The translations under genes and the position numbers were made by a program. DNA of 56,767 nt, taken from contig MCFE01000574.1 of NCBI GenBank assembly GCA_002104905.1, positions 1-56,767 on the forward strand, written 5' to 3'. Under the pieces are notes generated by a model. It was not told the origin of the DNA. It did not search any database and saw nothing but the letters and a program-made list of their open reading frames with translations. This stretch comes from Basidiobolus meristosporus CBS 931.73. Lineage: Eukaryota; Fungi; Basidiobolomycota. Shown here piece by piece: positions 1 through 42,548 of this stretch (positions are counted from its first letter, which is position 1; every line of letters starts with the position of its first letter).

Positions 1-2397
1 AGCGGTACTTGTACTTTCGAGTGCGGTAACCCGAATAGTTTGAATTACTGTGGGGCTGATAATTGCAGTCTTCAAATTTTTTTCTTTGATTGTGGTGAGG
101 ATGGTCGTAGGAGTTAACGTTATGGTACTCTCTTCATCAGTTAGGGTTATTATTGATGTCACAATTGGAGTTATTGTTGAAGTATTCGGATCTGGAACCA
201 TTGTGGTTTCAAGAATAGTCGTTGGCGCTTCCGTTACAACACTTTCCTGACCTGTTATTGTTTGTTCTATGGTTGTGATAGGACTCAAAGTTGAGGTATT
301 TGGATTTGGAACTATTGTGGTTGCAAACACTGTTGTAGGCGCTTCAGTCACAACGTTTTCCTGACCGGTCATTGTTTGCTCTACGGTAGTGACCGGAATC
401 AAAGTTGAAGTATTTGGATTTGGAACTATGGTGGTTGCAAACACAGTTGTCGGCACTTCTGTTACAACGCTTTCCTGACCGGTCATTGTTTGTTCTACGG
501 TAATTACAGGAATCGATGTTGAGGTGTTTGGATTGGGAACTATTGTGGTTGCAAACACTGTTGTCGGCGCTTCAATTACCACACTTTCTTGAGCTGTCAT
601 TGTTTGTTCCACGGTAATTATAGGAATCGATGTTGAGGTGTTTGGATTGGGAACTACTGTGGTTGCAAACACTGTTGTCGGCGCTTCAATTACCACACTT
701 TCTTGAGCTGTCATTGTTTGTTCCACGGTAGTGACAGGAATCGATGTTGAGGTGTTTGGATTGGGAACTACTGTGGTTGCAAACACTGTTGTCGGCGCTT
801 CAATTACCACACTTTCTTGAGCTGTCATTGTTTGTTCTACGGTAGTGACAGGAATCGATGTTGAGGTGTTTGGATTGGGAACTATTGTGGTTGCAAACAC
901 TGTTGTCGGCGCTTCAATTACTACGCTTTCTTGAGCTGTCATTGTTTGTTCTACGGTAATTACAGGAATCGATGTTGAGGTGTTTGGATTGGGAACTACT
1001 GTGGTTGCAAACACTGTTGTCGGCGCGTCAATTACAACACTTTCTTGAGCTGTCATTGTTTGTTCCACGGTAGTGACAGGAATCGATGTTGAGGTATTTG
1101 GATTTGGAACTATTGTGGTTGCAAACACTGTAGTCGGCGCTTCTGTTACAACGCTTTCCTGATCTGTCATTGTTTGTTCAACGGTAATTACAGGAATCAA
1201 TGTTGAAGTATTCGGATTTGGAACTACTGCGGTTTCAAATAAAGTTGTCGGCGCTTCTGTTACGACACTTTCCTGGCCTGTTATTGTTTGTTCCACGGTA
1301 ATTACAGGAATCAATGTTGAGGTATTCGGATTTGGAACTATTGTGGTTGCAAACACTGTCGTCGGCGCCTCAGTTACAACGCTTTCCGGACCTGTCATTG
1401 TTTGTTCTGCGGTAGTGACAGGAATCAAAGTTGAAGTATTTGGGTTTGGAACAATTGGGGTTGTAGACGCAGTCGCCGGCGCTTCAGTAACAACGCTGCT
1501 CTGTACAATACTGGATGGTGTATTCGGTGCAGGCATGTTGCAAGCATTCGAAGATGTATATCCTGTGTAGCCGCAGACTTTGTTGCTAGGGCAACATGAT
1601 AAATGAGGATTTTGATAGCTACCGGTTGGGCAAACGAAGGTGTATGGACTGTCATCGGATTCGCAGTAGTATCCACCGTAATTGCTATTACAAGCGGTCA
1701 AAGCGTTTTGGTACACGCTTTCGGGAAGGTACCCACACCCTTCTCTTACATCATCTTTTTTAATATTGCACCCGTTACTTGATAGTGAGACGCCCACATG
1801 GCCACATACATATCCGCTATCACAGCATTCTGTAGTAACGCTTGTAGTTACGGAATTCCAAACTAATCTGAATGGGCTATAAGCCGAAGGGCAGTAGACA
1901 CCTGAACCAATCGGGTTTAAATCCGAATAAGCGGTTTGTAATTCCTCTTTCGTAGGTTGTTCTGAACAATCTTTCTTGCTGGATCCGGAACCTGAGGTCG
2001 GCTCCCAGTATTGTTGGCATGGCTCAGGTAGGTTATCAACATTTACGCCTGGATTGCCATTCGTATCACACGGAGTGGTATCCCAAAGTCCTACTTCTAA
2101 GGTCGAGTATGTATTTGAGGAGCAACATGTCAGTTGGGCTGGATTATCTCCATCACATTCATAATAGTAGACAGCGTTTGCTACAGGAACCCAATAGTTA
2201 GAAGCGCCGGGATTGAGATCGCTGTTGGCACATTGCTTATTGGCAATTTCTTGCGATGTTTCCATGGAAAAAAATGATGCGCTATCTGCAGCTCTATCAT
2301 CGTTGATTACCGGTTGCGCATTCACGCATGGTGCACTGTTGGCTGCAAGCGCCAGCACAAGCGCTGAAAATCTTAGAAATGATTTCGTCAAAATCAT
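1..2397 (-). CDS. Secreted or cell-surface protein with signal peptide, Cys-rich head and mucin-like Thr-rich repeat stalk (3'-partial, >=799 aa)
   Basis: Manual minus-strand translation from the ATG at 2397 (MILTKSFLRFSALVLALAANSAPCVNAQPV...) stays open to position 1. It is missing from the ORF track because it has no stop in the window. The head is homologous to the 296-aa ORFs, then it continues ...NACNMPAPNTPSSIVQSSVVTEAP into the repeats and ends ...TIRVTALESTSTA at the edge. Confidence 0.9.
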   Translation of the reverse strand, partial: MILTKSFLRFSALVLALAANSAPCVNAQPVINDDRAADSASFFSMETSQEIANKQCANSDLNPGASNYWVPVANAVYYYECDGDNPAQLTCCSSNTYSTLEVGLWDTTPCDTNGNPGVNVDNLPEPCQQYWEPTSGSGSSKKDCSEQPTKEELQTAYSDLNPIGSGVYCPSAYSPFRLVWNSVTTSVTTECCDSGYVCGHVGVSLSSNGCNIKKDDVREGCGYLPESVYQNALTACNSNYGGYYCESDDSPYTFVCPTGSYQNPHLSCCPSNKVCGYTGYTSSNACNMPAPNTPSSIVQSSVVTEAPATASTTPIVPNPNTSTLIPVTTAEQTMTGPESVVTEAPTTVFATTIVPNPNTSTLIPVITVEQTITGQESVVTEAPTTLFETAVVPNPNTSTLIPVITVEQTMTDQESVVTEAPTTVFATTIVPNPNTSTSIPVTTVEQTMTAQESVVIDAPTTVFATTVVPNPNTSTSIPVITVEQTMTAQESVVIEAPTTVFATTIVPNPNTSTSIPVTTVEQTMTAQESVVIEAPTTVFATTVVPNPNTSTSIPVTTVEQTMTAQESVVIEAPTTVFATTVVPNPNTSTSIPIITVEQTMTAQESVVIEAPTTVFATTIVPNPNTSTSIPVITVEQTMTGQESVVTEVPTTVFATTIVPNPNTSTLIPVTTVEQTMTGQENVVTEAPTTVFATTIVPNPNTSTLSPITTIEQTITGQESVVTEAPTTILETTMVPDPNTSTITPIVTSIITLTDEESTITLTPTTILTTIKEKNLKTAIISPTVIQTIRVTALESTSTA
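175..1500 (-). repeat. Coding tandem repeat, 114 bp (38 aa) x ~11.5
   Basis: Equivalent positions fall at 248, 362, 476, 590, 704, 818, 932, 1046, 1160, 1274 and 1388. The unit is ~ESVVTEAPTTVFATTIVPNPNTSTLIPVITVEQTMTGQ. Central units are nearly identical and edge units are diverged. Confidence 0.95.
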
Positions 2398-5300
2398 CGC
2401 TTGCAATAGATGTCTCGGGGCACTTCATTCATTTATATATTACATGCAACATCGAATTTGGACTATCTTTTGGCCTGCGATATCTTTTCAGATAACCCTT
2501 TGATGGTCTTGCTGTAGTTGATTGACTGAATTTCTGGTTTGCAGGGTATCTTTTCTCGATATGTATCTATTTGTCTCGATTAGAATCACCGATAAGTACC
2601 ACAAAATGTCGGTCGAAAATAAAATTTTAAACCTAATTGTTTCAACAGACACTCATTGCAGATACCAACCGTAGCGGTTGCAATGCCATCAATATTTTGG
2701 ATCAGGCAATATCTCAATGCTCGATCCTTGTTACTTGACCTTGGTAAGCGCACATACTGATTCTGGATTCAATCACTTGACAAAAGTAATGGCCGATTGG
2801 CTGCCATTCGGGATAATCAATGCGCGCTGTATGCTGAATGCTCATAGGTGGAGCATTTCGTGAAAACTGGTTGTGAATGCTACTACAATTATCACTGCGT
2901 GTGAGATATGTGCGATGGAACTACTTGTCCAGCGGAACATTTGTCAACCTGGATGTATCGATTTCGAGTTATGCTCTCAAAGCTTAGCGCTCCAAAGGCC
3001 AGAAATACATATGAGGATAGCAGTTACCGGGACCTACTTCATTTCTTCCAGGTGGTCTGTTTGTAGATGGATTTCAAGAATACTAGTCGCGCATCGTGCA
3101 TTGACAAGATGATTATGAATCAATTAACAAAAAGGAGCTCACCACACTAGGGAATTAAAGAAACCTGTAACCCGATTGGTAGCTACTCGCAACCCCCCCT
3201 TCGGTAGAACCTTCGATCGTGACGTCCCTATTGTATAATCTAGATTCTTTGGTGCTATTTTTAGTAATGCCAATATTGGCTATTGATTATCACTTACATA
3301 TATGGAAGTATGTCTACAAAAAAATCAAGAACGTTGATCACGAAGACCGAGTAGCAGAATCTTCGCGCAGACTTAAGGGGAATATTCTGACTTGCTGCAT
3401 ATCGAAAACGATATCGAGATTGTACTTATTTCAACTGCTACGACACGGGCCAGATTTAACTTCGGATAAGTTTAAAGGGCTCAAATAACTCGTCAATATC
3501 CATATGAGTGAGTTTCTAGAATGTTGACCATGCAATCGGAACGTTGGCGGTAGATGTAAGCGGATACTCTATAGGCGGAGTATGGAATAAGAGTTTCGGA
3601 TTTCTCTTAGCAGAGCACAATTGAACATGCTGCTACATATCGAAAATAAGTTAATGTTGACAGATAGGCCTTTCTTCAGAAAAGGTACTTCCCTTGAAGA
3701 AGGAACCGATGTTATATGCTTGGTGAGTTCCACTTCAAACCCGGTTGTAAATGAACACCTCAGATACGTAATACAAGAACGGGAAAATTTACTTACGCTG
3801 GTGGAACTTACTCGATCTAAAGTAGGTCCATTGTGGAGGTTTGGTGGGCTTCTCTGAAATGTCACCAGATAATCCCTGATCCAATTAGAAGGGTCACAAA
3901 TTTTAGTTTTACTAGATCTATTTCCCTAATTAGTCCCGCATTAATTCACTTCAACTATAAATGGTTTTTATAGCGCTCATGCGAATCATCAGAAATGCTA
4001 ATTGAGTAAGGGGGTATGAGCGATGAGAATACCCAATAATTGAGATATTAGTCTTAGGAAGCTAACCCTACTTTCGGGATAATATTTGTGGCTTCTTGAG
4101 TCCACCAGATTGCTGATCTAGATTCACTTACTGCTGCGCTTACCTAGATTGTAAACCCGAGGATATCAGAGAAGCTAATTTAGTCATAATTGATATGTTC
4201 GATCTAATTATTCCGAAGGAGGTGGAGGGTCCCTAATCTTCTCAACATTTCTCAACAAGCAGTAGTACCCTAAGAGACGTAAAGGCTGCTCAACTGCTTG
4301 ATACCAATATTAAATGGTTGCACATAAAGCATTACGGTATACCCCTTTGCTACACTGTGTATACTCAGTATTAGCATTACCGCTGTTGAGAGTGACCGAT
4401 GTCACAACTTTACTTGTAAGTGAATACCTAGAATATCTGATACTAATTGATTTGACGTCAAGACTCGGCTGGTGAGAAGGGCCCAAAATATCAGCCACCT
4501 TGAGGATATTGATTTTGCCAACATGTCGATGGCAAGCTCTAGTGATTACACGATAAATCCATAGCATCTCTTTGTAGAATAGGGATTAAAGAGGTTTCTA
4601 ATCTATTTCTACACAGACCTTACCCGAGCCTTCCTCTATACGATACACCATATCATGCAACAAATCTAGGTTGATCAAGCTCCATCATGATTCCTCAAGT
4701 GACCCTATGAAGAATAATCCCAAACAGCGCAACTTGATCAAATATATTCATGTACCTCATCGAATATCAATATTGATCAAGTTACATTCCAAAATCAGCT
4801 TGAATTACAAACCATACACATGCTGGGTATGAAAATAAAAATTTGGATAACCAGCGATGAGTGGCACTATTACCACTACTATTGAAGACTGATTACAACG
4901 TTTTCCAGAATTTTGAGATCGCTTATTGCGCTGTAGACAACTACCGGTGTTGGCCCGACTATTCCAATTGTAGATTCCATTTTCGCTGACCATTCCAAAC
5001 ATATTTATGAACCGGGATAATCGCGTGCAGTACACGTATTTGCATTCATCATGCCTAGAGTAAACGCGTTCGGAATGGATGTGACACTGGTGGCAAAACA
5101 TGGGACACCAGTTATTGGTGGCAAGAACAAGTTAACATCACATGAATCGGGATGCACATTTAACATGGTCAGTTTTCATACATCTGGATAGGCCCGATTC
5201 CAATATATGTATTAGATCCCGTATTCAGTGCAATAATGCTTCAAAGATGTGATGCGACTCTTCATCTACTGCAAAAGATGATTCCAGCACTACAACAAAT

Positions 5301-6840
5301 GTGATATTTTCTATCTCGTATGCTGATTGTAAGAATCCAAACTTGTGCGCATATTGGGTTGCCTTTTCTACATGTGTGATGCGACTATGTCTAGGAACAC
5401 TTAGACGTGTATAGATTCTGACAGGAAATGCTGCTCCACTCTGACAACGCGTCTATCTCCTCACCGTATTTGTCTATGACGTTGATCAAGTCGGTGCTAG
5501 TCCAGCCTGATTAGGCCATGATCACGTAAAGCATATTGATTTTTCCAAGTGATTTCTTCAATTCCAAAATTCATTGGAATTCAGATAAACGATAGTTGCT
5601 ACAACGGAATCCTTCTTGGGTTATTCTATCTAACTACCAATTTAGTCCTGCATATCTAATGGATATTACATATTAGATGCAGGATACGCTAGCCAAATTA
5701 GTGAAATATAGAATGTTCTATTCCAATACTTCTGGATTCTTCGAGGTGGAAATATTTTGTGAAATAACGATCGATAGAATCGCCCATTTATGGTGATGCC
5801 ATTTAGAGTTATAGATAAGTTATTAACTAGGGAGTTGGCATGGACTACTAAATGCTCCTTAATACAGCTCTCTGACTACATCTATTACTGGAGTCGTCAC
5901 CATTTTTGATCTCCGCCATGCACAGTGAATAGGCCATGACATCGATTCTCTGCATAAACACCATCGGTCTCAATTGAGCTGTTATTCTTGTAGCCAACCT
6001 TTCAGGTAGATGCAGCCAAAACGAAAGTTTATATTCCCAGTGGAACCCACAGAAATGGTTGCGCTAACGCAAACATAGTAGTAGCATTTTTCAACTATCT
6101 TATCGAAAACTTTATAAAGCCAATGTACTTATTCCCATTGGCTCAAAAGATAATATGGTGTTTGCGCTGTCGGTCTCTCGGCAAGCGGAGCTTCCTGTTC
6201 ATGAATAGGGGATTAATTTCCGAATGTTGCAACAAGATTGTATCCATAAAAACACAGTCCTGAAACTCCGGATCATTACACCACAAATATTCCGAAATTT
6301 AGCAGCGTGTGATCCATTATCATTGCGTAACCTTCTAAGCAAGTATGAATGGCAATCACGATAATTGTCAAATCGATTTTGAGTAGTATACCTGACCACC
6401 AACAAAAGGGGGTTTCGGTTCAACTTAACAGAGAAGCCGTAGCCACTGTTCCCTATGAAAAGATTCAAACTTGGATTTTTCACTTTTACTTGACGGTATT
6501 CAGCTGGCATTTAGCCGGGATTCAGCCGGTCAATTTCATCAAAATTTTCAAATAATTTTAACTCACGGAAGATTGTTCTGGTTGCCACCAGAGTCGGTAT
6601 TAGGGTTTATGCGACACTGGCCCTTCCATAAATCCACATGCCCTCAAAGTAGCTGTAACCCCAAATGTTGAAAGTTGTAGCTTTAAGGAAACTTGGATCT
6701 CATATGGTATTTTGCTGGCATTCTGCTGGCCTTCATCAAATATTTTTCGTAGCGAGATTGTAATTTTTAAATATGTTTGAAGGGAAGGATCAATAAAAGA
6801 CAAAGTACGCAAACAAGAAGATAGTTCTTGCGGAGTGAAG
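2398..6840. repeat. Diverged copy of the array spacer unit
   Basis: Shares collinear blocks with the spacers between the 296-aa genes, e.g. gaatttctggtttgcagggtatc, ttactagatc...cctaattagtcccg, gtttctaatct, aaaacatgggac and gcctgattaggccatgatcacg. Confidence 0.85.
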
Positions 6841-6854
6841 AAACTCTTCAAGGG

Positions 6855-8178: not shown

Positions 8179-8527
8179 TATTGTAAAAATTTGTAATTCC
8201 ACCTAAATATTCACCTAACTTAGTCACTTAGATCATTACCCTCAAATCCTAGAGAATACTGACCAAATTCCTTGTTGGGATTTACTAAGAATATTTTCAC
8301 CAAAATACCAGGTACCCAGAACATGAAAATTCTCAAAGTTGTTCAAACAGCCCCAAACTTTGCACACATGTTCTTGGGACCTTCCTTAACCTATTCTACG
8401 TGTTTGTAATGCCAGGACCAGGTAAAAGTATAAATACTACTTTTACATTCAATAAATCATTAAGTGAAAACCACATAAACTACTTGTTCTCCCAATCACT
8501 TCCAATATCTCCAAGACTCTTACAACA
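8179..8527 (+). repeat. Copia 5' LTR (349 bp)
   Basis: Termini T(a/g)TTGTAA...TTACAACA. Repeated at 12512-13598 (interrupted) and as the reverse complement at 44021-44370. Confidence 0.92.
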
Positions 8528-8540
8528 GTTTATGAGCCCC
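8528..8540 (+). other. Copia primer-binding site
   Basis: GTTTATGAGCCC lies immediately after the LTR and resembles the GGTTATG(A/G)GCCC site of copia elements primed by an internal tRNA-iMet fragment. Confidence 0.65.
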
Positions 8541-11500
8541 AAGCTGTCACTCTCTGCAATGTCTACTACTGCTATTACTAGAATTTTTTGCTCTGCTGAA
8601 AAGTTGGATGGATCTAACTACCAAGTGTGGAAGGTGAAGATGGAGATACCGCTACAAGAAAGAGGCCTTTGGGATATTGTCATGGGAGAAGACTGCCCTC
8701 CTAAAAACGTGGGAGAGGAAGTCTTAAAGTACCAGAAGAAAGAGCAAAGTGCCTTTAACTGCATTTGCCTTAATGTCAAGGACAAATTGCTAATTCAATG
8801 CTCAAGAGCAAAAACGGCAAAGAACGCCTGAAAAGCATTAGAAGACACCTACCACTCATGTTCAGCTGCTAAGAAAATGTATCTGAGACAAAAATTCTTT
8901 ACTACAAAGATGCAGCCAGGAGAAGAAATGAAAAATCTAATTAACAGAATTACCCTGGTGGTAGATGAGATGAAATCTGTGGGTGTACCAACTACTGATG
9001 AGGATGTGATAGTTACCATCCTGAATAGCCTGACAGACAAGTTACAGGGCCTTGTATCAGCCCTAGAGTCCAGAACTGAAGATTTGACCTTAAATTACGT
9101 ATTTGGAAGGCTCCTAGATGAAGAATTAAGAAAATCAAGCACCAATAAGAAGGAAGAAGAAAATGCCTTAATAAGCAATGATAGCTAACAAAGGAGGTAC
9201 CCAAGACCCTACAAAGGCAACAGCAACCTGTTTTGCAACTACTGCAAAAGGAAAGGACACACATCAGGATGGTGTCTCAAAAAGAGAGATTATCAGCAAA
9301 AGAGGACTGAATATGGAAATGCTGCAACAACTGAAGATAGACTATTCATATCTGCACTAAATATGACCACAAACAAGGATTCTCAGATGTGGTATATTGA
9401 CTCTGGAGCTTCTCAACACTTTACACACCAAAAAAACTTTTTACCCAATATCAAGAAATTCCAATTAAGAAGGTTTTCATGGGTGACAATAGAACACTTG
9501 ATGCAGTGGGAGAAGGAACTATCCAAGTAAACCTAAGAAGCAGTGAAGGAAGCCATACACTGACCTTTAAAGAAGTACTCTATGTACCAGAAATAGCCAA
9601 GAACCTACTCTCCGTAAGCAAGGCCACAGCAGAAGGACTCAGTTTCAGTTTTGACAATTCTGGATGCAGGATCACTGATCAAAATGGTGCCCATATTCCC
9701 TTGGGCATCAGAGATCAGAATCTATACAAGTTGACTTATATTCCATCATATCTGGATGCCAATATAAGTTACTTAAATGAAGAAACACCAATGCTTTGGC
9801 ACAGGAGATTTGGACACATCAATTTTGATTATTTGCGCAAAATGATCAAAGATCAGCTGATTTCTGGAGTGATAACTGATCCCCCAGCTAGTTTAGAGCA
9901 CTGTGAAGCCTGCATATATGGGAAACCAGCCAGACAACCATTTAAGAGCTCTGGGTTAATCAAAACTAAGAAAAAATTAGATCTAATTCACTCAGATCTG
10001 TGTGGACCCATGCAAAATTTATCCTTAGGCGGGATGAAGTATTTAATCACTTTTATTGATGATTATACAAGATACACATGGGTCTACTTCATGGAGAGAA
10101 AGGAAGAAGCTCTGTCTAAGTGCAGGGAGTTTAAAGCCATGGTTGAGAGAGAAACTGGTGGAAAAATCAAGAAAATACGCTCTGACAATGGTGGAGAATA
10201 TACCTCAAACTCTTCATCCACTTCTGCAAAATTCATGGGATAAAGCAAGAGACTACTGTACCATACTCCCCGCAGCAAAATGGAGTAGCAGAACAAGCTA
10301 ACAGATCAATAATTGATATGGCAAGATCTATGATCCATGATCAAAAATTATCCTATGATTTTTGGGCGGAATCAGTTGCCACTGCGGTATACCTTAAAAT
10401 AGGAGTTATAACAGAATACTTTGTGCTTATACTCCATTTGAAGCCTGGCATGAATACAGACCAAGTGCAGAACATCTAAGAATACTTGGGTGTACAGCAT
10501 ATGCCAAAAAACTGGCCCAAAATCAGTCAAAATTTGAGCCAAAAAGTGTAAAATGCATATTTTTGGGCTACTGCAATGAGAGTAAGGCATACAGACTCTA
10601 CAATACCAAAGCAAAGAAGCTGATCAAGTCCAGGGATGTGTTGTTTGATGAAAATTCAAAATTTTCACAAAAAATGACATCAGATGATGACAAAAATTTG
10701 ATCTCAAGTCCACCAATTGTCAGGATTGAATTTGAGCAAAACAGTGAAAATTTTTTCACTCAAGAGGACTCTACAACCATGGTTCAGCCAGAATCAGTGC
10801 CCAGGAATATCCCAGAAGTGATCATTCCAGTACCAAATGCCCAGAGATCCAATTGGACAAGAAATAGTCTAAGTTACTATATCAATGAAGGTACAAACTT
10901 AGTCTATGCCTATTCAGTCCATATTGATGAACCCCAGACTGTAAAAGAGGCCCTAAATAGCCCTCAGACAAAGTTTTGGAGATCTGCAATGACTGAGGAA
11001 TATCAGGCCCTAATAGAAAATCAAACTTGAGATTTAGTCAAATTACCAATCAACCAAAAATCAATTGGATGCAGATGGGTCTTCAAGACATAATACAAGG
11101 CTGATGGTACAATTGAAAGATACAAAGCAAAACTTGTAGCCAAAGAATACTCTCAAACAAAAGGACTTGACTATACTGAGACCTTTGCACCGGTAGCCAA
11201 GTTTAATTCCATCAGATTAATATTGGCTATTGCAGCCAAATATAAGTTTTTTATTCATCAAATGGATGTAAAAACTGCATTTTTGAATGGAGAACTTGAT
11301 GAGGACATGTATATAGACCAGCCTGATGGGTTTGTTGACCAAGATAACCCCCATTTGGTCTGTAAGCCTGAAAGGTCACTACATGGTCTCAAACAATCAC
11401 CAAGAGCCTGGAATTGCAAGATAGATTCTTATTTGGAATCTTTGAGTTTCAAAAGAAGTAATGCTGACTAGAGTATATACTATAAGCCAGATAGAGCAAA

Positions 11501-12728
11501 TCCAGTCCTATTAGCTCTATATGTGGATGATCCTATTATAGCTGCCAATAACCTAGAAACATTGGAAGAGACTAAATCCAGCCTTTCTAAGGAGTTCAAG
11601 ATGTCCAATCTAGGAGGACTTAGTTACTACTTAGGGATTAAGTTCTCCATAGACAGAAGTACCCAGACTATCACCCTAAGCCAATCCAAGTATATTCAGG
11701 ATATACTAAAGAAGTACCAAATGGAAGACTGTAAACTGGCAGCTACCCCAAGGGAGACAAACCTCAACTTGGTCAAATCTCAATCAAATCAAGAGAGCTT
11801 GGTGCCATCTGAAAGCCCTGACTTTCCTTATCAATCTATAACCGGCAGTCTGATGTATATCATGCTTGGAACACGTCCAGATATCTTGCATTCAGTGGGA
11901 GTTGTCAGCCAACATAATCAGAACTATGGATCTGATCATATTGCAGCAGTTAAGCAGATTTTTAGATACCTAAAAGGAACTGCTGATATCTGCTTAAGAT
12001 ACACTTATAAGGACTCAGAACAGAATCTTGCGGGATAATCTGATGCTGACTGGGGACAAAATTTGGAAGACAGAAGATCCACCACAGGATGCACCTTTCT
12101 TTACTGTGAAGGAGCAATTTCATGGAATTCAAGAAAGCAACCAACCGTAGCACTATCCACCACAGAGGCAGAGTATATGGCCATCTGTGAAGCTACAAAA
12201 GAAGCAATGTGGTTAAGAAAGCTCTTTACAGATTTAGGCCTATGTCACAAAACGCCTATAACTTTATTTCAAGATAATCAAGGATGTATGCAATTAGGTA
12301 GAAATCCAACTTTTCATGCTAGAACTAAGCTCATAGATATTAGACATCATTTCATATGTGAAGCTATAGAGAATAACTTAGTTAGCTTAGTCTACTGTCC
12401 TACAGATGAAATGATTGCAGACATATTTACCAAACCATTAGCTAGAGACAAGTTTGAATATCTTAGGTCAAAATTAGGACTAGTCAGTATGAACATTTAG
12501 CTGAGTGGGAGTGTTGTAAGAATTTGTAATTCCACCTAAATATTTACCTAACTTAGTCACTTAGATCATTACCCTCAAATCCTAGAGAATACGGACCAAA
12601 TTCCTTGTTGGGATTTACTTAGAATATTTTCACCAAAATACCATATACCCAGAACATGAAAATTCTCAAAGTTGTCCAAACAGCCCCAAACTTTGCACAC
12701 ATGTTCTTGGGACCTTCCTTAACCTATT

Positions 12729-13463
12729 AGACTTGTTCCATCGGATAGTGCCACATTGAGCCATGAGTGCCAAATGATGCCCTAGTGTGCCAGAGAGGCC
12801 AAGTGAGCCTCTACCTGGCCACAGAGTGTGAAACATAGCTCCACATCTTCATGCAAAGCAGCCCCTGTGTTTCACCCATTGCGCAGGAGAAAATCCATTT
12901 TTTGACCTTTTTTTTTGGATCAATGTTGTGCAGGATGTGTTAGAGCAAAAGCAGATTGAAGATATGCATCTGGTACTCAATACCCATGGCACTCTGAATC
13001 TAGCTCCTGTAGCTTGTATCATGTCACAAAAATGAATGGCACTATCTTGGTCCACTGGTACTATCTGGCACTATAAGTGCTTTGTATAGATCTTACTTTA
13101 GGGCTAATATTTAAATATAGTGCCAGATAATACCAGTGGACCAAGATAATGCCATTCATTTTTGTGACATGATACAAGCTACAGGAGCTGGATTCAGAGT
13201 GCCATGGGTATTGGGTACCAGATGCATATCTTCCGTTCTGCTGTGCTCTTTCACATCCTGAGCTACATTGGTCCACAAAAAAAGGTCAAAAAATGGATTT
13301 TCTCCTGCGCAATGGGTGAAACACAAAGGGCTGCTTTACATGAAGATGCAGAGCTATGTTTCACACTCTGTGGCCAAGTATAGGCTCACTTGACCTCTCT
13401 GGCACACTATGGCATCATTTGGCACTCATGGCTCAATGTGGCACTATCCAACGAAACAAGTCT
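12729..13463. mobile_element. Non-autonomous foldback/MITE-like element with ~347-bp inverted arms, a 40-bp loop and a 3-bp ATT duplication
   Basis: Starts AGACTTGTT and ends AACAAGTCT. The arms are reverse complements up to ctggcactata/tatagtgccag. It interrupts the copia 3' LTR at aacct-ATT-ctac, with ATT on both sides. Confidence 0.88.
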
Positions 13464-13609
13464 ATTCTACGTGTTTGTAATGTCAAGACCAGGTAAAAGT
13501 ATAAATACTACTTTTACACTCAATAAATCATTAAGTGAAAGCCACATAATCTACTTGTTCTCCATATCACTTCTAATATCTCCAAGAATCTTACAACAAA
13601 TCCAAGATG

Positions 13610-14140
13610 CCTTAATGTGAAGGATAGATTGGTAATTCTATGTTTAAGAGCCCTACTGCTGAGATTGCATGGAATGTATTCCAAGACACCTATCAAGCAA
13701 GTTCTGCTAATGAAATGTTGTATTCAAGAAAAATATTCCTCACAGTATTGATGCTCCAAAGAGAAGCTGTGAAAAGCTTCATTCATAAGGTCACAATGCT
13801 GGTGGATGAGCTGAAATCAGTTAGGGTGGAAGTTACTGCTGAAGATATGATAGCCATACTCCTCAATAGCCTGACAGACAGGTTTTCAAGCCTAGTACAG
13901 ATCCTGAAGTCCAGATTTGTATTGACACTTAATGATGAGAGCAGAAGGCTACTGCATGAAGGATCACAAGTATTACCATCAAATAAGAAAATAAAAGATT
14001 TTGCCTTAATAAGCAAAGTTGGACACCAAAGAAGGTATTCAAAGCATTCAAAGAAAGGAACAACTACACAGATGAGAACTGCAAAAAGAAAGGTCATTTG
14101 TTCAGGAGTGGCTTTTATAGCAACCCTATCAAAAAGCTGA
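13610..14140 (+). pseudogene. Copia gag remnant (second, diverged element)
   Basis: ORF 13640-14140 (TAEIAWNVFQDTY...MLVDELKSVRVEVTAEDMIAILLNSL) aligns with the gag at 8780-9130. Confidence 0.8.
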
Positions 14141-15854: not shown

Positions 15855-16037
15855 TGAGTCTCTTTACAAGCTTGGTCATTTCTTAGCTGCACACCAGCTA
15901 GAGCTCAACACCAATTGAGTCTCTTTACAAGCTTGGTCATTTCTTAGCTGCACACCAGCTAGAACCCAACAACAATTGAGTCTCTTTACAAGCTTGGTTA
16001 TTTCTTAGCTGCACACCAGCTAGAACCCAACACCAAT
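15855..16037 (+). repeat. 61-bp tandem triplication inside gypsy gag
   Basis: tgagtctctttacaagcttggt(c/t)atttcttagctgcacaccagctaga... starts at 15855, 15916 and 15977. The corresponding sequence is single-copy in gypsy copy 2. Confidence 0.92.
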
Positions 16038-23757: not shown

Positions 23758-23806
23758 CTAATTTTCACTACTGGAAGTTGTATTTGTTACTACTGGTGAA
23801 AATCAT
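23758..23806 (-). pseudogene. Family copy with the head deleted (ATG and terminal codons only)
   Basis: The minus strand reads tattaactATGATTTTCACC joined directly to AGTAGTAACAAATACAACTTCCAGTAGTGAAAATTAG. The upstream and downstream flanks match those of the intact copies. About 840 bp of the 891-bp CDS are missing. Confidence 0.85.
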
Positions 23807-26378: not shown

Positions 26379-29277
26379 AGTTAATAATAGATATTCCCGA
26401 GCATTTCATTCATTTATAAACTAGATGCAACACCGCATCAGGACAATCTTCTGGCCTTCGATATCTTTGCCGATAACCCTGTGACCGCTGTTGATTGACT
26501 AAATTTCTGGTTTGCAGGGTATCTTTTCTTGATTTGTATCTCGATGTATCCGATTGGAATGTATCTTTTGGTGATATATGTCTAGATTCAATGACTGGGC
26601 ACAAGTAATGGCCGATTGGCAGCCATTCGGGATAATCAGTGCGCGCTGTAAGCTGGTAAGTTTAGCCACCCGGGACAAGTCAATACGCTTTGCAAGCTGA
26701 AAGTTGAGCCACCCTGAAAACGCAACGGGCTTTGTGGGCTGATAAGTGGAGCCGCCCGGGTGAACTAATTGTGAATGATGGTAAAAAAATCTCAAAGAGT
26801 GGCATATTGACGGTATTCATACTGCTTCCCTAATGAGCTCAGTATTGAAAACGAGATCCTAATTGGGCTTCAAACCCAGTTGCAAATAAATACTTCAAAT
26901 AAGTTACTAAGGACCAGTAAATATTCTTATGCAGGTAAAACCTGCTCGATCTAAATAGCAGTGCTATGGAGTTTTGGTGGGCTAATCTGAACTGTCCCCG
27001 GACTATCGCTGAACCAATTCGAAGGGTTACCAATTTCAGTGTTACTAGATCCATATTCCTAATTAGTCCCGTAATTAATGCACTCCAGCTATAAAGGGAT
27101 GTTATGGCGCTCAAGCGAATCATCAGTAATGCTAATTGGGATGTTAGTATTAGGAAGTAAACCCTACTTTCTGTTCTATGCTTGTGGCTTCTTGAGGCCG
27201 CTTGAATGTCGATCTGAAAATCCAACCATTGGATCAATCCGCTTCTCGAAGGGCTTGGTGCTATTGGCCGACTATATTAGTAAGCCTTGGGATTTAATTG
27301 ATATGGATACACTTACGGCCGCGCTCATCCAGATTGTAAACCCGGAGAAGTTGATTATGCCTTTATCAATAAGAAGTCCAGGGTTTTTTCCGAAGGAGAG
27401 GGGTCCCAAATTTTCCCAACAAGCAGTATTTCCCAGAATATTGGCCGCAATGAAGCTCCTTTAGCAACCACTAGAATTTACAGGATAATCATAGACTTTG
27501 AAGAAGTTTCTAATCTAAATTTGTTCAGAACTTACCCGAACATACCGTTTCCATAAGCCACATCCCTGCTGTTAAAGACCTAGGTCGACCAAGCTCCATC
27601 ACACCAAGAATAATGAACTTTCTCAATACTATTCATCGAATATCTAAATTGATAAAGCTACATCGCGGGTGGTATTGGTACTGTTTGCTAAACATGTATC
27701 AAAGTCGTTACTGCGAATCAGAACAAGAGAATAGGATTAAAAACTGTGACAAATGTCAGTAAGAAATGGGAAACACATTTAGCGAGAAATCACTACACAT
27801 ATTCAATTCTAATATTTTTGTGATCGTAATTATGCCATGCGACTATTGATTATGTACTGCTATGAATATAAATAGATATTAAATGTTGCCTTGCCCTCGT
27901 AGTGAATGTTATCATACCTCAATATCCAGACATGCAAGCACCCAGATGGCTGGAACATTATATTCTTGCTGGTTGTTGTAGAAATGTATAGATAATATTG
28001 TAATATACGAACCATATCATTGGTCGTCCTACCGAGGCTAATGAGAAATTCGAAAACCTAGATGAATGTAAGTTATGTTGTCACGATACTGGCACTTTTG
28101 TCATCCTCTATTTAAATGACTAATCAGTTTCCGTGCCTCTGGATAGGCCCCATTAAAGTGTAAGTATTAGATCCCGTATTCGGTACCATAGTGTTTCGCA
28201 TAATGTATAAGATGATTTCAGCACTACAGCCTATGAGATATTTTCTCTCTCGTATACTATACGTGAATATATAAAATTGCGCGCGTTCCTCTATGCCATA
28301 GATTGGTTTGTCTTTCCTACATATGCGATGCGACTACGACTTATTAATCCTGAATTTATTCTTCCAAATGATTACTTGAGTTCCAAAATCCTTTATAAGT
28401 CGGATAAATTGTTTGTTGCTACAGCGGAGTCCTTCTTGGGTTATCCTATAGAATTACCTCTTTAGTCCTACGTAATACTTACAAGATGAACCATGCGCTA
28501 TCCAATTAGTAAAAAATAGAATATTCCATTTCAATATTTCTGGATTCATCGAGTTGTAAATAATTTGCGAGAAAACGATCGCTAGAATCACCTAATTGTG
28601 GAAACTCCATTAAGGGCTCAAGTTGTTATCAGTGAGTTGGCATGGACCATTAAATACTCCCTAATACAGCTCTCGGATTACATATGCTAATAGGGTCGTC
28701 ACCAATCCTGATCTCCACCGTGCAGAGTGGGTAGATCATGGAGTAAAATTCACTACACACATACCATCCACATCAACTCAGCCTTTCAGCGATTTATCCA
28801 AAGCGAAAGAACTATCAAGTTTGGCATTATCTGCACTGAAGTAAATTTCATGTCGACTAATCCAAAATGAATGTTTACGCCCCCAATGGGACATATAGTG
28901 ACGACTGTACTGACACAAATATGGAAGTATTTCTTAACTATCGTATGGGAAACATAATTGCCTATAAATTTACATCACTAGGTTTTAGGCAACGGTGACC
29001 TGACTGATAGACTGACCATAACAGTATGTGGTTAGTGTACTCACTTTATCTGTGATGCTTAATATTAATGCCGAAATTGGTTAGAATTATATGTAATCGA
29101 ATTTAGCGCTATAATCTTGATAAGGATTGTCATAGGGATTTCTTAGTAAAACCTTTCTGACCACTTATAGCTCATTACATAGCAATGATGCACTCAATGT
29201 TAAGGTAGGAGCTGTTGTTATAGTAAGAACCCTTTATTGTGGAGTCTCACTACGGCTCGTTAAATCTGTGGTATTTT

Positions 29278-30168
29278 CTAATTAACAACACTTGAAGTTG
29301 TATTCGTTACCAGCATGTTGCAAGCATTCGAAGTTGTATATCCCGAGTGGCCGCAGACTTTGTTGCTAGGACAACACGACAGATGAGGATTTAGATAGTC
29401 ACCAGTTGGGCAAACAAAGGTGTATGGACTGTCTTCGGATTCGCAGTAGTATCCACCGTAATTGCTATTACAAGCGTTCAAAGCGTTTTGGTACACGCTT
29501 TCGGGAAAGTCCCCACACCCTTCTCTAACATCCTCTTTTTTTACGTTGCACCCATTGCTTGTTAATGAGATGCCCACATGGCCGCATACATTTCCACTGT
29601 CACAACATTCGGTGTCAACGCTTGAAGTTGCGGAATTGCAAACTAATTTGAAGGGGCTATATGCCGAAGGGCAGTAGACACCACCACTGCCAATAGCGTT
29701 GCAGATGCTTACAGCGCTCTGAAACTCCTCTTGCGAAGGCTTTGCTGAGCAATCTTTCTTGCTGGATCCTGAACTTGAGGTCGGCTCCCAGTATTGTTGG
29801 CATAGCTCAGGTATGTTATCAACATTTACGCCTGGATTGCCATTCATATCACACGGAGTGGAATCCCAAAGTCCCACTTCCAAGTTGGTGTATGTATTTG
29901 GGGGGCAACATGTCAGTTGGGCCGGACTTGCTCCATCACATTCGTAATAGTAGACGCCGTTTGTTTCAGGCACCCAGAAGTTGGTAGCGCCGGCATTGAG
30001 ATAGCTGTTGCGACATTTCTCATTGGCAACTTCTTGGGATGTTGCCATCGAGAAAAATGCAGCTCTGTCACCGTTGAATGTAGGGTGCGCATTTGCGAGT
30101 AGTTCACTGCTGGTTGTAAGTGCTAGCACAAGTGCCGACAATCTCATAAAAGAATCGGTGAGCATCAT
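29278..30168 (-). CDS. Secreted Cys-rich protein, 296 aa (copy 3)
   Basis: Intact ORF that differs from copy 2 at only a few residues. Confidence 0.92.
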   Translation of the reverse strand: MMLTDSFMRLSALVLALTTSSELLANAHPTFNGDRAAFFSMATSQEVANEKCRNSYLNAGATNFWVPETNGVYYYECDGASPAQLTCCPPNTYTNLEVGLWDSTPCDMNGNPGVNVDNIPELCQQYWEPTSSSGSSKKDCSAKPSQEEFQSAVSICNAIGSGGVYCPSAYSPFKLVCNSATSSVDTECCDSGNVCGHVGISLTSNGCNVKKEDVREGCGDFPESVYQNALNACNSNYGGYYCESEDSPYTFVCPTGDYLNPHLSCCPSNKVCGHSGYTTSNACNMLVTNTTSSVVN

Positions 30169-33252: not shown

Positions 33253-34143
33253 CTAATTAACAACACTGGAAGTTGTATTCGTTACCAGCATGTTGCAAGC
33301 ATTCGAAGTTGTATATCCCGAGTGGCCGCAGACTTTGTTGCTTGGACAACACGACAGATGAGGATTAAGATAGTCACCAGTTGGGCAAACAAAGGTGTAT
33401 GGACTGTCTTCGGATTCGCAGTAGTATCCACCGTAATTGCTATTACAAGCGTTCAAAGCGTTTTGGTACACGCTTTCGGGAAAGTCCCCACACCCTTCTC
33501 TAACATCCTCTTTTTTTACGTTGCACCCATTGCTTGTTAATGAGATGCCCACATGGCCGCATACATTTCCACTGTCACAACATTCGGTGTCAACGCTTGA
33601 AGTTGCGGAATTGCAAACTAATTTGAAGGGGCTATATGCCGAAGGGCAGTAGACACCACCACTGCCAATAGCGTTGCAGATGCTTACAGCGCTCTGAAAC
33701 TCCTCTTGCGAAGGCTTTGCTGAGCAATCTTTCTTGCTGGATCCTGAACTTGAGGTCGGCTCCCAGTATTGTTGGCATAGCTCAGGTATGTTATCAACAT
33801 TTACGCCTGGATTGCCATTCATATCACACGGAGTGGAATCCCAAAGTCCCACTTCCAAGTTGGTGTATGTATTTGGGGGGCAACATGTCAGTTGGGCCGG
33901 ACTTGCTCCATCACATTCGTAATAGTAGACGCCGTTTGTTTCAGGCACCCAGAAGTTGGTAGCGCCGGCATTGAGATAGCTGTTGCGACATTTCTCATTG
34001 GCAACTTCTTGGGATGTTGCCATCGAGAAAAATGCAGCTCTGTCACCGTTGAATGTAGGGTGCGCATTTGCGAGTAGTTCACTGCTGGTTGTAAGTGCTA
34101 GCACAAGTGCCGACAATCTCATAAAAGAATCGGTGAACATCAT
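33253..34143 (-). CDS. Secreted Cys-rich protein, 296 aa (copy 4)
   Basis: Intact ORF, near-identical to copy 3. Confidence 0.92.
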   Translation of the reverse strand: MMFTDSFMRLSALVLALTTSSELLANAHPTFNGDRAAFFSMATSQEVANEKCRNSYLNAGATNFWVPETNGVYYYECDGASPAQLTCCPPNTYTNLEVGLWDSTPCDMNGNPGVNVDNIPELCQQYWEPTSSSGSSKKDCSAKPSQEEFQSAVSICNAIGSGGVYCPSAYSPFKLVCNSATSSVDTECCDSGNVCGHVGISLTSNGCNVKKEDVREGCGDFPESVYQNALNACNSNYGGYYCESEDSPYTFVCPTGDYLNPHLSCCPSNKVCGHSGYTTSNACNMLVTNTTSSVVN

Positions 34144-37494: not shown

Positions 37495-38385
37495 TTAGTT
37501 TACACTACTGGAAGTGGTATTCGCTACCAGCATGTTGCAAGCATTCGAAGTTGTATATCCCGAGTGGCCGCAGACTTTGTTGCTTGGACAACACGACAGA
37601 TGAGGATTAAGATAGTCACCAGTTGGGCAAACAAAGGTGTATGGACTGTCTTCGGATTCGCAGTAGTATCCACCGTAATTGCTATTACAAGCGTTCAAAG
37701 CGTTTTGGTACACGCTTTCGGGAAAGTCCCCACACCCTTCTCTAACATCCTCTTTTTTCACATTGCACCCATTGCTTGTTAGTGAGATGCCCACATGGCC
37801 GCATACATTTCCACTATCACAACATTCGGTGTCAACGCTTGAAGTTTCGGAATTGCAAACTAATTTGAAGGGGCTATATGCCGAAGGGCAGTAGACACCA
37901 CCACTGCCAATAGCGTTGCAGATGCTTACAGCGCTCTGAAACTCCTCTTGCGAAGGCTTTGCTGAGCAATCTTTCTTGCTGGATCCTGAACTTGAGGTCG
38001 GCTCCCAGTATTGTTGGCATAGCTCAGGTATGTTATCAACATTTACGCCTGGATTGCCATTCATATCACACGGAGTGGAATCCCAAAGTCCCACTTCCAA
38101 GTTGGTGTATGTATTTGGGGGGCAACATGTCAGTTGGGCCGGACTTGCTCCATCACATTCGTAATAGTAGACGCCGTTTGTTTCAGGCACCCAGAAGTTG
38201 GTAGCGCCGGCATTGAGATAGCTGTTGCGACATTTCTCATTGGCAACTTCTTGGGATGTTGCCATCGAGAAAAATGCAGCTCTGTCACCGTTGAATGTAG
38301 GGTGCGCATTTGCGAGTAGTTCACTGCTGGTTGTAAGTGCTAGCACAAGTGCCGACAATCTCATAAAAGAATCGGTGAGCATCAT
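37495..38385 (-). CDS. Secreted Cys-rich protein, 296 aa (copy 5)
   Basis: Intact ORF with the same C-terminus as copy 2 (VANTTSSSVN). Confidence 0.92.
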   Translation of the reverse strand: MMLTDSFMRLSALVLALTTSSELLANAHPTFNGDRAAFFSMATSQEVANEKCRNSYLNAGATNFWVPETNGVYYYECDGASPAQLTCCPPNTYTNLEVGLWDSTPCDMNGNPGVNVDNIPELCQQYWEPTSSSGSSKKDCSAKPSQEEFQSAVSICNAIGSGGVYCPSAYSPFKLVCNSETSSVDTECCDSGNVCGHVGISLTSNGCNVKKEDVREGCGDFPESVYQNALNACNSNYGGYYCESEDSPYTFVCPTGDYLNPHLSCCPSNKVCGHSGYTTSNACNMLVANTTSSSVN

Positions 38386-41657: not shown

Positions 41658-42548
41658 CTAATTTACAATACTGGAGGTTGTATCCGATACAAGCATATTG
41701 CAAACATTCGAGGCTGTATATCCCGAGTGGCCGCAGACTTTGTTGCTAGGACAACACGACAGATGAGGATTTAGATAGTCACCAGTTGGGCAAACAAAGG
41801 TGTATGGACTGTCTTCGGATTCGCAGTAGTATCCACCGTAATTGCTATTACAAGCGTTCAAAGCGTTTTGGTACACGCTTTCGGGAAAGTCCCCACACCC
41901 TTCTCTAACATCCTCTTTTTTTACGTTGCACCCATTGCTTGTTAGTGAGATGCCCACATGGCCGCATACATCTCCACTATCACAACATTCGGTGTCAACG
42001 CTTGAAGTTGCGGAATTGCAAACTAATTTGAAGGGGCTATATGCCGAAGGGCAGTAGACACCACCACTGCCCATGTCGTTGCAGATGCTTAGAGCACTTT
42101 GTAATTCCTCTTGCGAAGGTTTTGCTGAACAACCTTTCTTGCTGGATCTTGGACTTGAGGTCGGCTCCCAGTATTGTTGGCATAGCTCAGGTATGTTATC
42201 AACATTTACGCCTGGATTGCCATTCATATCACACGGAGTGGAATCCCAAAGTCCCACTTCCAAGTTGGTGTATGTATTTGAGGAGCAACATGTCAGTTGG
42301 GCTGGACTTGCTCCATCACATTCGTAATAGTAGACGCCGTTTGTTACAGGAACCCAGTAGTTAGATGCGCCGGCATTGAGATAGCTATTGAGGCATTGCT
42401 CATTGGCAACTTTTTGCGATGTTTCCATGGAAAAAAATGCAGCTCTATCGTAGTTGACCGTAGGGTGCGCATTTGCGCGTGGTGCACTGCTGGTTGTAAG
42501 TGCTAGCACAAGTGCTGACAATCTCATAAAAGAATTGGTAAACATCAT
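41658..42548 (-). CDS. Secreted Cys-rich protein, 296 aa (copy 6, mosaic)
   Basis: Intact ORF. The N-terminal part is diverged and partly like the long gene (FFSMETSQ, GASNYWVPV, CCSSNTY), while the C-terminal half matches copies 2-5. Confidence 0.92.
   Translation of the reverse strand: MMFTNSFMRLSALVLALTTSSAPRANAHPTVNYDRAAFFSMETSQKVANEQCLNSYLNAGASNYWVPVTNGVYYYECDGASPAQLTCCSSNTYTNLEVGLWDSTPCDMNGNPGVNVDNIPELCQQYWEPTSSPRSSKKGCSAKPSQEELQSALSICNDMGSGGVYCPSAYSPFKLVCNSATSSVDTECCDSGDVCGHVGISLTSNGCNVKKEDVREGCGDFPESVYQNALNACNSNYGGYYCESEDSPYTFVCPTGDYLNPHLSCCPSNKVCGHSGYTASNVCNMLVSDTTSSIVN

Follow-up and report, generated by a model that had tools for sequence, protein, structure and literature searches.

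Most proteins with CBM14 modules bind chitin, and they come chiefly from animals; to our knowledge, the Avr4 effectors of plant pathogens are the only fungal CBM14 proteins that have been studied. Nor do we know of an adhesin family in which soluble, head-only paralogs have been amplified alongside the adhesin. Among the solved CBM14 structures compared in PMC6128652, an extra N-terminal helix together with four disulfides is found in the Avr4 proteins only, and a diverged Avr4 relative binds de-esterified pectin (PMC8104879). Here we describe a gene family of Basidiobolus meristosporus CBS 931.73 in which a Cys-rich head occurs once with a stalk and many times without it. The stretch of DNA analysed (the window) is the whole 56,767-bp scaffold MCFE01000574.1, with position 1 at the scaffold end.

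One stalked gene and an array of head-only genes

Five intact minus-strand ORFs of 296 aa are spaced at about 4 kb (3790, 3975, 4242 and 4163 nt) and share 93-99.6% DNA identity with zero indels (Table 1). Three further 296-aa copies (d1, d2 and d3) were found on a second scaffold, MCFE01000019.1, which is collinear with the window, and across all eight short copies the 891-nt coding region is indel-free; in the deposited annotation these are single-exon genes of 891 nt. A sixth short-type unit of the window, copy 0, lies in a stretch that is also collinear with the second scaffold, and has kept its promoter, the ATG and five codons, which run straight into the last ~11 codons, followed by the TAG and the beginning of the relic described below.

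The long paralog has the same type of signal peptide as the short copies, and its head DNA is 83-85% identical to theirs. In the stalk, TRF identifies about 11.6 clean 114-nt units (175-1494, 89% matches) besides degenerate ones, and units 2-11 form an internally expanded tandem array. Thr makes up 26% of the stalk, Val 14% and Pro 10%. The stalk has 12 N-X-S/T sequons, and its coding frame is the sole open one, the other five frames holding 10-57 stops. The exact long ORF is absent from the protein collection searched, a search with the 799-aa ORF found no homolog of 440-1400 aa, and on MCFE01000019.1 the third copy has no counterpart of the long gene within 10 kb downstream. Upstream of the long gene, three patches (2405-2586, 3733-4004 and 5535-5927) are homologous to the intergenic DNA of the array, which shows the long gene to be the last unit of the short-gene array. 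A TATA-containing promoter block, of which ~45 nt are invariant, is common to all nine genes (eight short and the long one); in the long gene the TATA-like element lies about 30-45 nt upstream of the ATG. A preliminary description of the window had reported the head once fused to a long Thr-rich stalk and five times, with the same signal peptide, ending at one shared stop codon position ahead of a decayed stalk relic. Both observations are confirmed, and the head-plus-stalk layout is real.

Table 1. Coordinates of the features of the family and its surroundings in the window
Feature	Position	Strand	Remarks
Long paralog, partial	1..2397	-	799 codons from ATG 2397, no stop, runs off scaffold end
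Long gene, mucin-like stalk	1-1500	-	Thr/Val/Pro-rich 38-aa (114-nt) repeats, at least 13 units
Long gene, Cys-rich three-module head	about 1501-2316	-	
Long gene, signal peptide	about 2317-2397	-	
Long gene, promoter-proximal block	2398..2590	-	homologous to blocks upstream of short genes
Unit of the long gene, upstream DNA	2405..5927	-	three patches matching array intergenic DNA
LTR retrotransposon insertions	8181..20793	.	between long gene and short-gene array
Copia-type gag/integrase/RT ORFs	9479-14140		
Gypsy-type element LTRs	about 14741-15040 and 20146-20445		
Copy 0 (sixth short-type unit)	about 23700..23934	-	coding region nearly all deleted
Stalk relic of copy 1	25238..25487	-	tblastn with the long protein continues across the stop
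Short copy 1	25488..26378	-	296 aa, stop TAA
Conserved promoter block, copy 1	26379..26590	-	
Stalk relic of copy 2	about 29028-29277	-	
Short copy 2	29278..30168	-	296 aa, stop TAG
Conserved promoter block, copy 2	30169-30377	-	
Stalk relic of copy 3	about 33003-33252	-	
Short copy 3	33253..34143	-	296 aa, stop TAG
Conserved promoter block, copy 3	34144-34350	-	
Stalk relic of copy 4	about 37245-37494	-	
Short copy 4	37495..38385	-	296 aa, stop TAA
Conserved promoter block, copy 4	38386-38600	-	
Stalk relic of copy 5	about 41408-41657	-	
Short copy 5	41658..42548	-	296 aa, stop TAG; most diverged
Conserved promoter block, copy 5	42549-42757	-	

LINE stacks adjoin both arrays at the ends of their scaffolds, and short TTAGGG-like tracts are present inside the stack of MCFE01000574.1. 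The setting of the arrays therefore looks subtelomeric, as the preliminary description had noted is often the case for fungal adhesins. Distinct intergenic DNA is covered at even depth by genomic contigs of the same organism, indicating that the copies are real. A contig joint (25479->29269) was considered as a copy-number variant and rejected; it may stem from copy d3, which has a copy-1-type flank and a TAG stop. In a sequence set from another organism (X3), pieces of the coding region only were seen, 94-100% identical.

The junction between head and stalk

In all nine short-type units the stop falls at the same codon and about two decayed stalk units follow it, with stops and frame changes that vary by copy. 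Of the two relic units, one resembles the first stalk unit of the long gene and one the 12th, which is degenerate. The relics give stalk-like peptide only once the frame has been corrected, which fits decayed coding DNA. A 2-nt indel distinguishes the junction in the short copies from that in the long gene. This could also be read in the opposite direction, with a head-only ancestor, an indel that opened the 3' flank in one copy and a stalk then built by tandem expansion. The indel being the only difference at the junction and the internal expansion of units 2-11 are both compatible with a derived stalk, and the B. ranarum relative described below ends at its contig edge and gives no outgroup information. 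However, two units of distinct kinds, first-unit-like and degenerate-12th-like, are already present in the flank of every short copy, and the need for frame correction is what decayed coding DNA would show. We therefore regard a derived stalk as rather improbable and prefer the loss of the stalk from the short copies.

Another possibility is that the short ORFs are first exons, spliced into downstream exons from a GT two codons 5' of the stop (GTAAAC or GTAAAT). This is very unlikely, because the site reads GTTAAT in copies 2 and 3, the 450 nt 3' of the stop hold several stops in each frame as well as indels that differ among copies, whereas the coding region is indel-free in eight copies, and the genes are annotated with a single exon.

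Gene conversion and selection

The flanks of the short copies pair by position across the two scaffolds (copy 1 with d3, 91-94% identical; copy 2 with d2, 82-92%; copy 3 with d1, 91%), and the flanks of copies in one array are 64-82% identical. The coding DNA, in contrast, groups by array, with 98.3-99.7% identity within and 93.5% between arrays. That flanks track position while coding regions track the array points to concerted evolution by gene conversion. Homogenisation with copies 1-4 has affected the 3' half of copy 5. Judging from these comparisons, gene conversion is active, and only among short copies that belong to the same array. No conversion tract joins the short copies to the long gene in 90-nt windows over the long head: identity to any short copy is at most 96.7% per window, the longest identical run is 42 nt, and the best-matching windows are the ones conserved in all copies. 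Copy 5 was considered as a patchwork with tracts from the long gene and this was rejected, since its long-like sites are mostly common to the copies on MCFE01000019.1 and are thus ancestral. The earlier proposal that the short copies may serve as sequence donors for the long gene thus finds no support, the conversion seen being confined to the short copies. Cassette-type surface variation, in which silent short copies would donate head sequence to an expressed long gene, is consistent with the activity of gene conversion and with the subtelomeric-looking setting, but we give it very little weight: the tracts stay within one array, the long-like sites of copy 5 are ancestral, and the short copies have conserved TATA promoters of their own and are under purifying selection.

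Between arrays, dN/dS for copy 1 and d1 is 0.12 at a dS of 0.23; for copies 1 and 5 of the window it is 0.26, and pN/pS among the stalk repeat units is 0.24. The low dN/dS, the low pN/pS of the stalk and the shared promoter block suggest that both forms, short and stalked, look functional. The long head evolves faster (dN/dS 0.37-0.45) and has lost two cysteines in module 2, so that it may be degenerating. The short copies derive from truncation and copy 0 is clearly dead, and the remainder could in principle be decaying remnants of stalked genes that are alike only through conversion. This is hardly credible, because the between-array dN/dS at such a dS is beyond what conversion within arrays can explain, and all eight ORFs are intact and indel-free with conserved promoters. 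The same evidence bears out the earlier view that the amplified head-only form looks functional. We have high confidence in the anatomy, the selection and the gene conversion as described.

Fold and family of the head

The head had been called unrecognised. Fold searches, and the name "Chitin-binding type-2 domain-containing protein" that UniProt gives to three of the paralogs, instead place it as a diverged CBM14/peritrophin-A-like triple module. Pfam PF01607 (CBM_14) did not match the whole proteins at E<=1 or the single modules at E<=10 (an insect control protein, P0011, gave E 7.9e-199), and a PDB sequence search at E<=10 returned chance matches only, with no relative and no Avr4. ESM Atlas gave nothing firm, with scores of 0.72 or below that are leads only. 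With phmmer, a true 14x CBM_14 insect mucin was matched at E 6.5e-4 for the whole library. In 1.84 billion representatives and 5.8 billion clusters, relatives were found in B. meristosporus and as one partial B. ranarum protein only. A bacterial protein of 1317 aa (P0010, E 7.7e-10) was rejected: it has no relevant Pfam domain and matches just the short repeated aromatic hairpin motif of module 1, a motif-level resemblance.

Residues 138-296 (modules 2 and 3) are modelled by AF2 with a pLDDT of 80, and module 1 poorly (pLDDT <50). In a fold search of 48,161 PDB representatives, run without the Foldseek prefilter, the top six are all CBM14 proteins (EHEP, PfAvr4, Der p 23, Blo t 12, CfAvr4 and the CBM14 of CHIT1), with low Z scores of 3.0-4.2. 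Re-examined Foldseek matches to the PDB agree, with CBM14 first. Among AFDB clusters, chitin-binding type-2 proteins, obstructors and intestinal mucins make up most of the best 30 matches (lowest E 1.6e-6), and the best Swiss-Prot matches by fold are cbd-1, CPG-2, PIF and peritrophins. As the structural scores are low in absolute terms, it is the enrichment of CBM14 proteins at the top ranks that carries the assignment.

Modules 2 and 3 are each predicted to have an N-terminal helix and four strands in a small beta-sandwich of the distorted, disulfide-stabilised kind known from solved CBM14 structures, with 8 Cys including a CC doublet; the extra helix and the 8 Cys per module are of the Avr4 type. 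Module 1 has 6 Cys at another spacing and is tied to modules 2 and 3 solely via hhalign (E 4e-4). The six-Cys consensus spacing of CBM14 was found in none of the three modules, and the core around the Y-Y-C and C-P motifs is the only part that aligns with CBM14 (hhalign E 0.004). On the models, a CBM14-like fold of the head modules is likely.

A proposed history and role

The whole explanation that we lean towards is that of a Basidiobolus-restricted, CBM14-like family in an array homogenised by conversion, whose short product is a chitin-shielding lectin. The family would comprise secreted disulfide-rich proteins with a mature part of three diverged CBM14 modules. In the ancestral gene the head was probably followed by a Thr/Pro-rich mucin-like stalk, a layout that survives in a single copy where the old array ends. 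A 2-nt indel and a stop at the head-stalk junction would have given rise to a soluble head-only form, which is now found in all the remaining units, namely five intact copies and the deleted copy 0 in the window and three copies on MCFE01000019.1. Conversion, which reaches over the coding region and some 250 nt of flank to either side, holds the short genes near-identical in each array, and the truncation may have spread in the same way; the short genes stay coding under purifying selection. The locus is an unusually clean record of concerted evolution, with two collinear arrays in which flank orthology is set against coding identity, and it may record a domain-loss allele fixed across a tandem family.

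The short protein might be a multivalent soluble lectin, produced at high dosage, which would coat chitin or cross-link it, both the ligand and the benefit of dosage being presumed. Basidiobolus cycles through insects and herptile guts (those of insect-eating amphibians and reptiles), in surroundings rich in chitin and chitinases. The most likely target would be the fungus's own wall, shielded against chitinases in the guts of insectivores, and the stalked paralog, if it is indeed tethered, would be a counterpart of the short protein held at the surface or in the matrix. The shielding role by itself is quite possible, and we propose it tentatively. A CBM14 fold with another ligand, such as a glycan, a polyphenol or a host-gut molecule, would make the amplified protein a decoy or scavenger and not a wall shield. 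The best structure match, EHEP, with three peritrophin-A domains, was solved with tannic acid, a diverged member of the Avr4 family binds de-esterified pectin (PMC8104879), and as Pfam CBM_14 misses the modules the binding residues need not be conserved. Chitin is nevertheless the usual ligand of CBM14, the fungal wall is chitinous in surroundings rich in chitin and chitinases, and the modules keep the aromatic-rich core motif; we consider a non-chitin ligand unlikely.

Going beyond the chitin-shielding lectin that we propose, we speculate that the short genes do in animal guts what Avr4 does in plants, encoding a dosage-amplified, trivalent soluble lectin that would cloak wall chitin from gastric and gut chitinases, and that the head-only state spread by conversion through formerly stalked surface-mucin genes, with one stalked copy escaping. 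This full version is doubtful; if true, concerted evolution would have turned an entire family of tethered proteins into soluble ones. If the head is CBM14-like, the idea of chitin shielding would extend to an animal-associated zygomycete, by way of a genus-restricted and Pfam-invisible family of three modules.

Comparison with known systems

The components, namely CBM14 modules, a mucin stalk, tandem amplification and gene conversion, are all already familiar. The Flo, Als and Epa adhesins have the same order of parts as the long gene (signal peptide, binding head, Ser/Thr-rich tandem-repeat stalk, here 13 units of 38 aa with 26% Thr) and lie, as the Basidiobolus arrays seem to, in subtelomeric regions rich in repeats, where arrayed paralogs recombine with one another, but their heads are PA14 or Ig-like, whereas the Basidiobolus head is CBM14-like and has no Pfam match. 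Insect intestinal mucins and proteins of the peritrophic matrix resemble the long gene in combining CBM14-like modules with Thr/Pro-rich repeats that are probably O-glycosylated, and an intestinal mucin 3 and the 14x CBM_14 mucin are among the matches of the family; however, insect mucins interleave CBM14 and mucin segments, whereas the long gene has one head and then one stalk.

The short proteins share their plan with the obstructor/CPAP3 proteins and peritrophins of arthropods, which consist of a signal peptide and three tandem CBM14 modules only in about 230-300 aa, and obstructor-E and peritrophins are among the fold-search matches of the head. These are animal proteins with the six-Cys consensus and are Pfam CBM_14-positive, in contrast to the Basidiobolus modules, which have 8 Cys (module 1: 6) and are Pfam-negative. 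EHEP of Aplysia kurodai (PDB 8in3/8in6) is likewise soluble with three peritrophin-A-type domains and is the best match of solved structure, but it is a mollusc digestive-fluid protein, solved with tannic acid bound, and has no sequence similarity to the Basidiobolus protein.

The Avr4 proteins of Cladosporium fulvum and Pseudocercospora fuligena are, like the Basidiobolus proteins, secreted and fungal, and their CBM14 fold, with an extra helix and four disulfides per module, is the one predicted for the Basidiobolus modules 2 and 3. VIA alignments of the Basidiobolus modules with them span 63-65 residues of the 75-79-residue chains, helix included. The role shown for Avr4, the shielding of wall chitin from chitinases, is the one that we propose by analogy. 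Avr4 has one module and comes from a plant-pathogenic Dothideomycete, whereas the Basidiobolus protein has three, without detectable sequence similarity to it, and belongs to an animal-gut zygomycete. Unlike Avr4, its genes are tandemly amplified and one paralog carries a mucin stalk, and its chitin binding is putative.

Organization of the head-only genes

The preliminary description had one stalked gene together with five head-only copies that end at a single codon before a decayed stalk, and this arrangement is confirmed by the ORFs, the indel junction and the tblastn matches to the stalk relics. The window is itself one complete scaffold (56,767 bp) of Basidiobolus meristosporus CBS 931.73. 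The five short genes are spaced 3.8-4.2 kb apart, and the deposited record annotates short genes as single 891-nt exons. In all short genes the stop lies at the identical codon, where a 2-nt indel sets them apart from the long gene, and 3' of every stop the tblastn match reads through into a relic of about two stalk units, interrupted by stops and frame changes in a pattern that differs from copy to copy. Splicing past the stop seems unlikely from this sequence: the candidate donor near the stop is GTTAAT in two copies, and in the DNA beyond every frame is interrupted by stops and the indels are copy-specific. Copy 0 is a sixth copy of the short type with an internal deletion, and three further 296-aa copies (d1-d3) are found near the end of a second scaffold, MCFE01000019.1. 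The copies are not duplicates created by assembly, since the diverged intergenic DNA is covered evenly by genomic contigs from the sequenced strain. A 157-aa ORF beside copy 2 has no Pfam match, and no ORF of at least 150 aa occurs at this place in the other units; it is probably spurious.

Features of the array and neighbouring elements in the window
Feature	Position	Strand	Description
Long gene	ATG 2397 to window position 1		Open for 799 codons, runs to scaffold end
Stalk repeats (TRF)	175-1494		11.6 clean copies of a 38-aa (114-nt) repeat; degenerate units on to scaffold end
Upstream patches	2405-2586, 3733-4004, 5535-5927		Match array intergenic DNA
Gypsy-type LTR element	14707-20793		Between array and long gene
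Copy 0	~23700-23934		Promoter, ATG and five codons fused to last ~11 codons; TAG at same codon; start of relic
Short copy 1	25488-26378	minus	ORF exactly 296 aa, stop TAA
Short copy 2	29278-30168	minus	ORF exactly 296 aa, stop TAG
157-aa ORF	30200-30673	minus	Begins with ATG; overlaps copy 2 promoter region
Short copy 3	33253-34143	minus	ORF exactly 296 aa, stop TAG
Short copy 4	37495-38385	minus	ORF exactly 296 aa, stop TAA
Short copy 5	41658-42548	minus	ORF exactly 296 aa, stop TAG
Non-LTR element stack	43513-56767		RT-bearing; upstream bound of array
TTAGGG-like short tracts	e.g. ~46510-46535, 46690-46725		At element junctions in the stack
Gypsy-type relative	48031-52460		86-91% identical to the LTR element; within the LINE stack

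The long stalked gene

The ORF of the long gene is absent from the annotation. Its signal peptide is of the same kind as that of the short genes (hydrophobic core, A-x-A ahead of the cleavage point), and its head is 83-85% identical to theirs at the DNA level. Since three patches of the DNA upstream of it are homologous to array intergenic DNA, the long gene is the terminal member of the same array, separated from the rest by Copia- and gypsy-type LTR retrotransposons. The long head lacks two Cys of module 2 that are kept in the short genes, leaving a Cys count that is still even, and in comparison with the short genes shows a dN/dS of 0.37-0.45, evolving faster than they do. Among the stalk repeat units pS is 0.30 and pN 0.074 (ratio 0.24), and the stalk has one open frame against 10-57 stops in each of the other five, which indicates that it has been kept as protein.

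Selection and regulation

Between the two arrays the short genes have a dS of 0.23 and a dN of 0.027 (dN/dS 0.12; 0.26 for copy 1 against copy 5), with no indel in the 891-nt coding region across the eight short copies. All nine genes have in common a conserved stretch of about 170 nt ahead of the ATG, with a TATA-like element in it, and one block of some 45 nt does not vary at all, not even in the long gene, whose coding DNA is only 83% identical. This conservation points to shared regulation under selection, and we infer that the genes are expressed. Compared with window 24400-30399, sequencing run X3, from the same study under another organism label, contains coding-region pieces at 94-100% identity and no intergenic DNA; it is a transcriptome or else represents a related strain that has conserved the gene alone.

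Concerted evolution of the two arrays

Whole units of the window have collinear counterparts on the second scaffold. Flanking DNA, taken 400-1400 nt from the genes, pairs the copies by position, while coding DNA groups them by array.

Identity between copies in flanking and coding DNA
Pair	Flanking (%)	Coding (%)
c1-d3 (same position)	91.0 / 93.8	about 93.5
c2-d2 (same position)	81.7 / 91.8	about 93.5
c3-d1 (same position)	90.8 / 90.7	about 93.5
Within an array	64-82	c1-c4 98.3-99.6; d1-d3 99.0-99.7

Because selection cannot homogenise synonymous sites, we attribute the array-wise coding identity to gene conversion, which by these comparisons is limited to the coding region and roughly 250 nt on each side and has acted in each array separately, after the two segments diverged. 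Only the 3' half of copy 5 is homogenised: identity to copy 1 is 96.1% there against 91.5% over the 5' half, and several 90-nt windows reach 100%. The 'long-like' sites of copy 5 are for the most part also present in d1 and are therefore ancestral. As conversion is active, the common stop codon is no proof that one truncated copy was amplified; the truncation could instead have spread by conversion through pre-existing units. The idea that the short copies serve as cassette donors for the long gene finds no support here, since the long head shares with any short copy an identical stretch of at most 42 nt and the windows of highest long/short similarity are those conserved in all copies.

Scaffold ends and mobile elements

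At the scaffold ends both arrays lie against stacks of non-LTR retrotransposons, and the stack in the window contains short TTAGGG-like tracts; a subtelomeric setting is plausible. The same RT-bearing element forms the upstream bound of both, on the second scaffold at L003 (a piece of that scaffold) 1-6750. The second-scaffold array breaks off at the equivalent of window ~35400, so nothing in it corresponds to copies 4 and 5; the pattern resembles what truncation of the two chromosome ends at separate points would leave. Downstream of its third copy there is also an LTR related to the gypsy-type element of the window. Window 23123-34526 is collinear with MCFE01000019.1 (L001-L003) at ~90-92%, intergenic DNA and copy 0 included. 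Rather than alleles, the two scaffolds seem to be duplicated segments that have since diverged, or homeologous chromosome ends.

Identity and predicted fold of the head

Neither the whole protein nor its single modules matched Pfam, and the head matched no PDB sequence. The family is very small: an exhaustive HMMER search of 1.84 billion representatives returned only its own cluster, one Basidiobolus ranarum protein (partial, 190 aa, 35% identity) and two marginal matches. One of the two, at E 6.5e-4 (whole library), is an insect mucin that contains 14 genuine CBM_14 domains. The mature protein can be read as three modules. Modules 2 and 3 can be aligned with each other and have eight invariant Cys; module 1 has six and shows a weak relationship to these two (hhalign E 4e-4). 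In an AlphaFold2 model of residues 138-296 (pLDDT 80), modules 2 and 3 each have a helix at the N terminus and then four short strands; module 1 is modelled poorly. The top 30 AFDB clusters are mostly chitin-binding type-2, obstructor, intestinal-mucin and chondroitin-proteoglycan-2 proteins (best E 1.6e-6), and fold matches among Swiss-Prot models are cbd-1, CPG-2, PIF and peritrophin-1/-48. In a VIA search of 48,161 PDB representatives, which is independent of Foldseek, ranks 1-6 are all CBM14: EHEP, PfAvr4, Der p 23, Blo t 12, CfAvr4 and the CBM14 of CHIT1. The Z-scores are only 3.0-4.2 and the domain is small, so the case for CBM14 rests on rank enrichment and not on scores. In a published comparison of solved CBM14 structures, the fungal Avr4 proteins alone combine a further N-terminal helix with four disulfides (PMC6128652), and the head modules are predicted here to have the same features. 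The head is thus probably a diverged, Avr4-like triple CBM14. It had been described as unrecognised, which these concordant fold matches contradict, as does the label "Chitin-binding type-2 domain-containing protein" that paralogs already carry in UniProt.

A short aromatic hairpin motif of module 1 (window 25968-26246) matches one repeated at least five times in P0010, a bacterial-looking surface protein of 1317 aa (E 7.7e-10, whole library). The likeness could reflect a genuine remote relationship, or a sugar-binding hairpin may have converged by chance.

Proposed function and relation to known systems

The product of the short genes would be a trivalent lectin, secreted and disulfide-knotted, to which many co-regulated genes contribute, and the stalked copy would display this head from a glycosylated spacer, either at the surface or within a matrix. 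The proposed pairing of a tethered form with an amplified soluble form agrees with the anatomy and with the signs of selection. If Avr4 (PMC6128652) and the three-CBM14 obstructor/CPAP3 proteins are taken as analogues, chitin is the most likely ligand of the lectin. We regard a different ligand as less likely. Insectivorous vertebrates secrete gastric chitinases. Basidiobolus species are described as insect-dispersed fungi of the herptile gut (PMC9391592). For these two reasons we prefer, tentatively, a role in shielding wall chitin.

A literature search combining CBM14 with Basidiobolus or Entomophthoromycotina found no paper. CBM14 modules, mucin stalks, tandem amplification and gene conversion are already known, and the proteins were deposited with a chitin-binding label. 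What is new is the recognition of a Pfam-invisible, Avr4-like, three-module CBM14 family restricted to Basidiobolus, the pairing of head-only and stalked forms, and the clean view of concerted evolution afforded by two arrays. The long gene, as far as its sequence reaches, is laid out like an intestinal mucin or adhesin.
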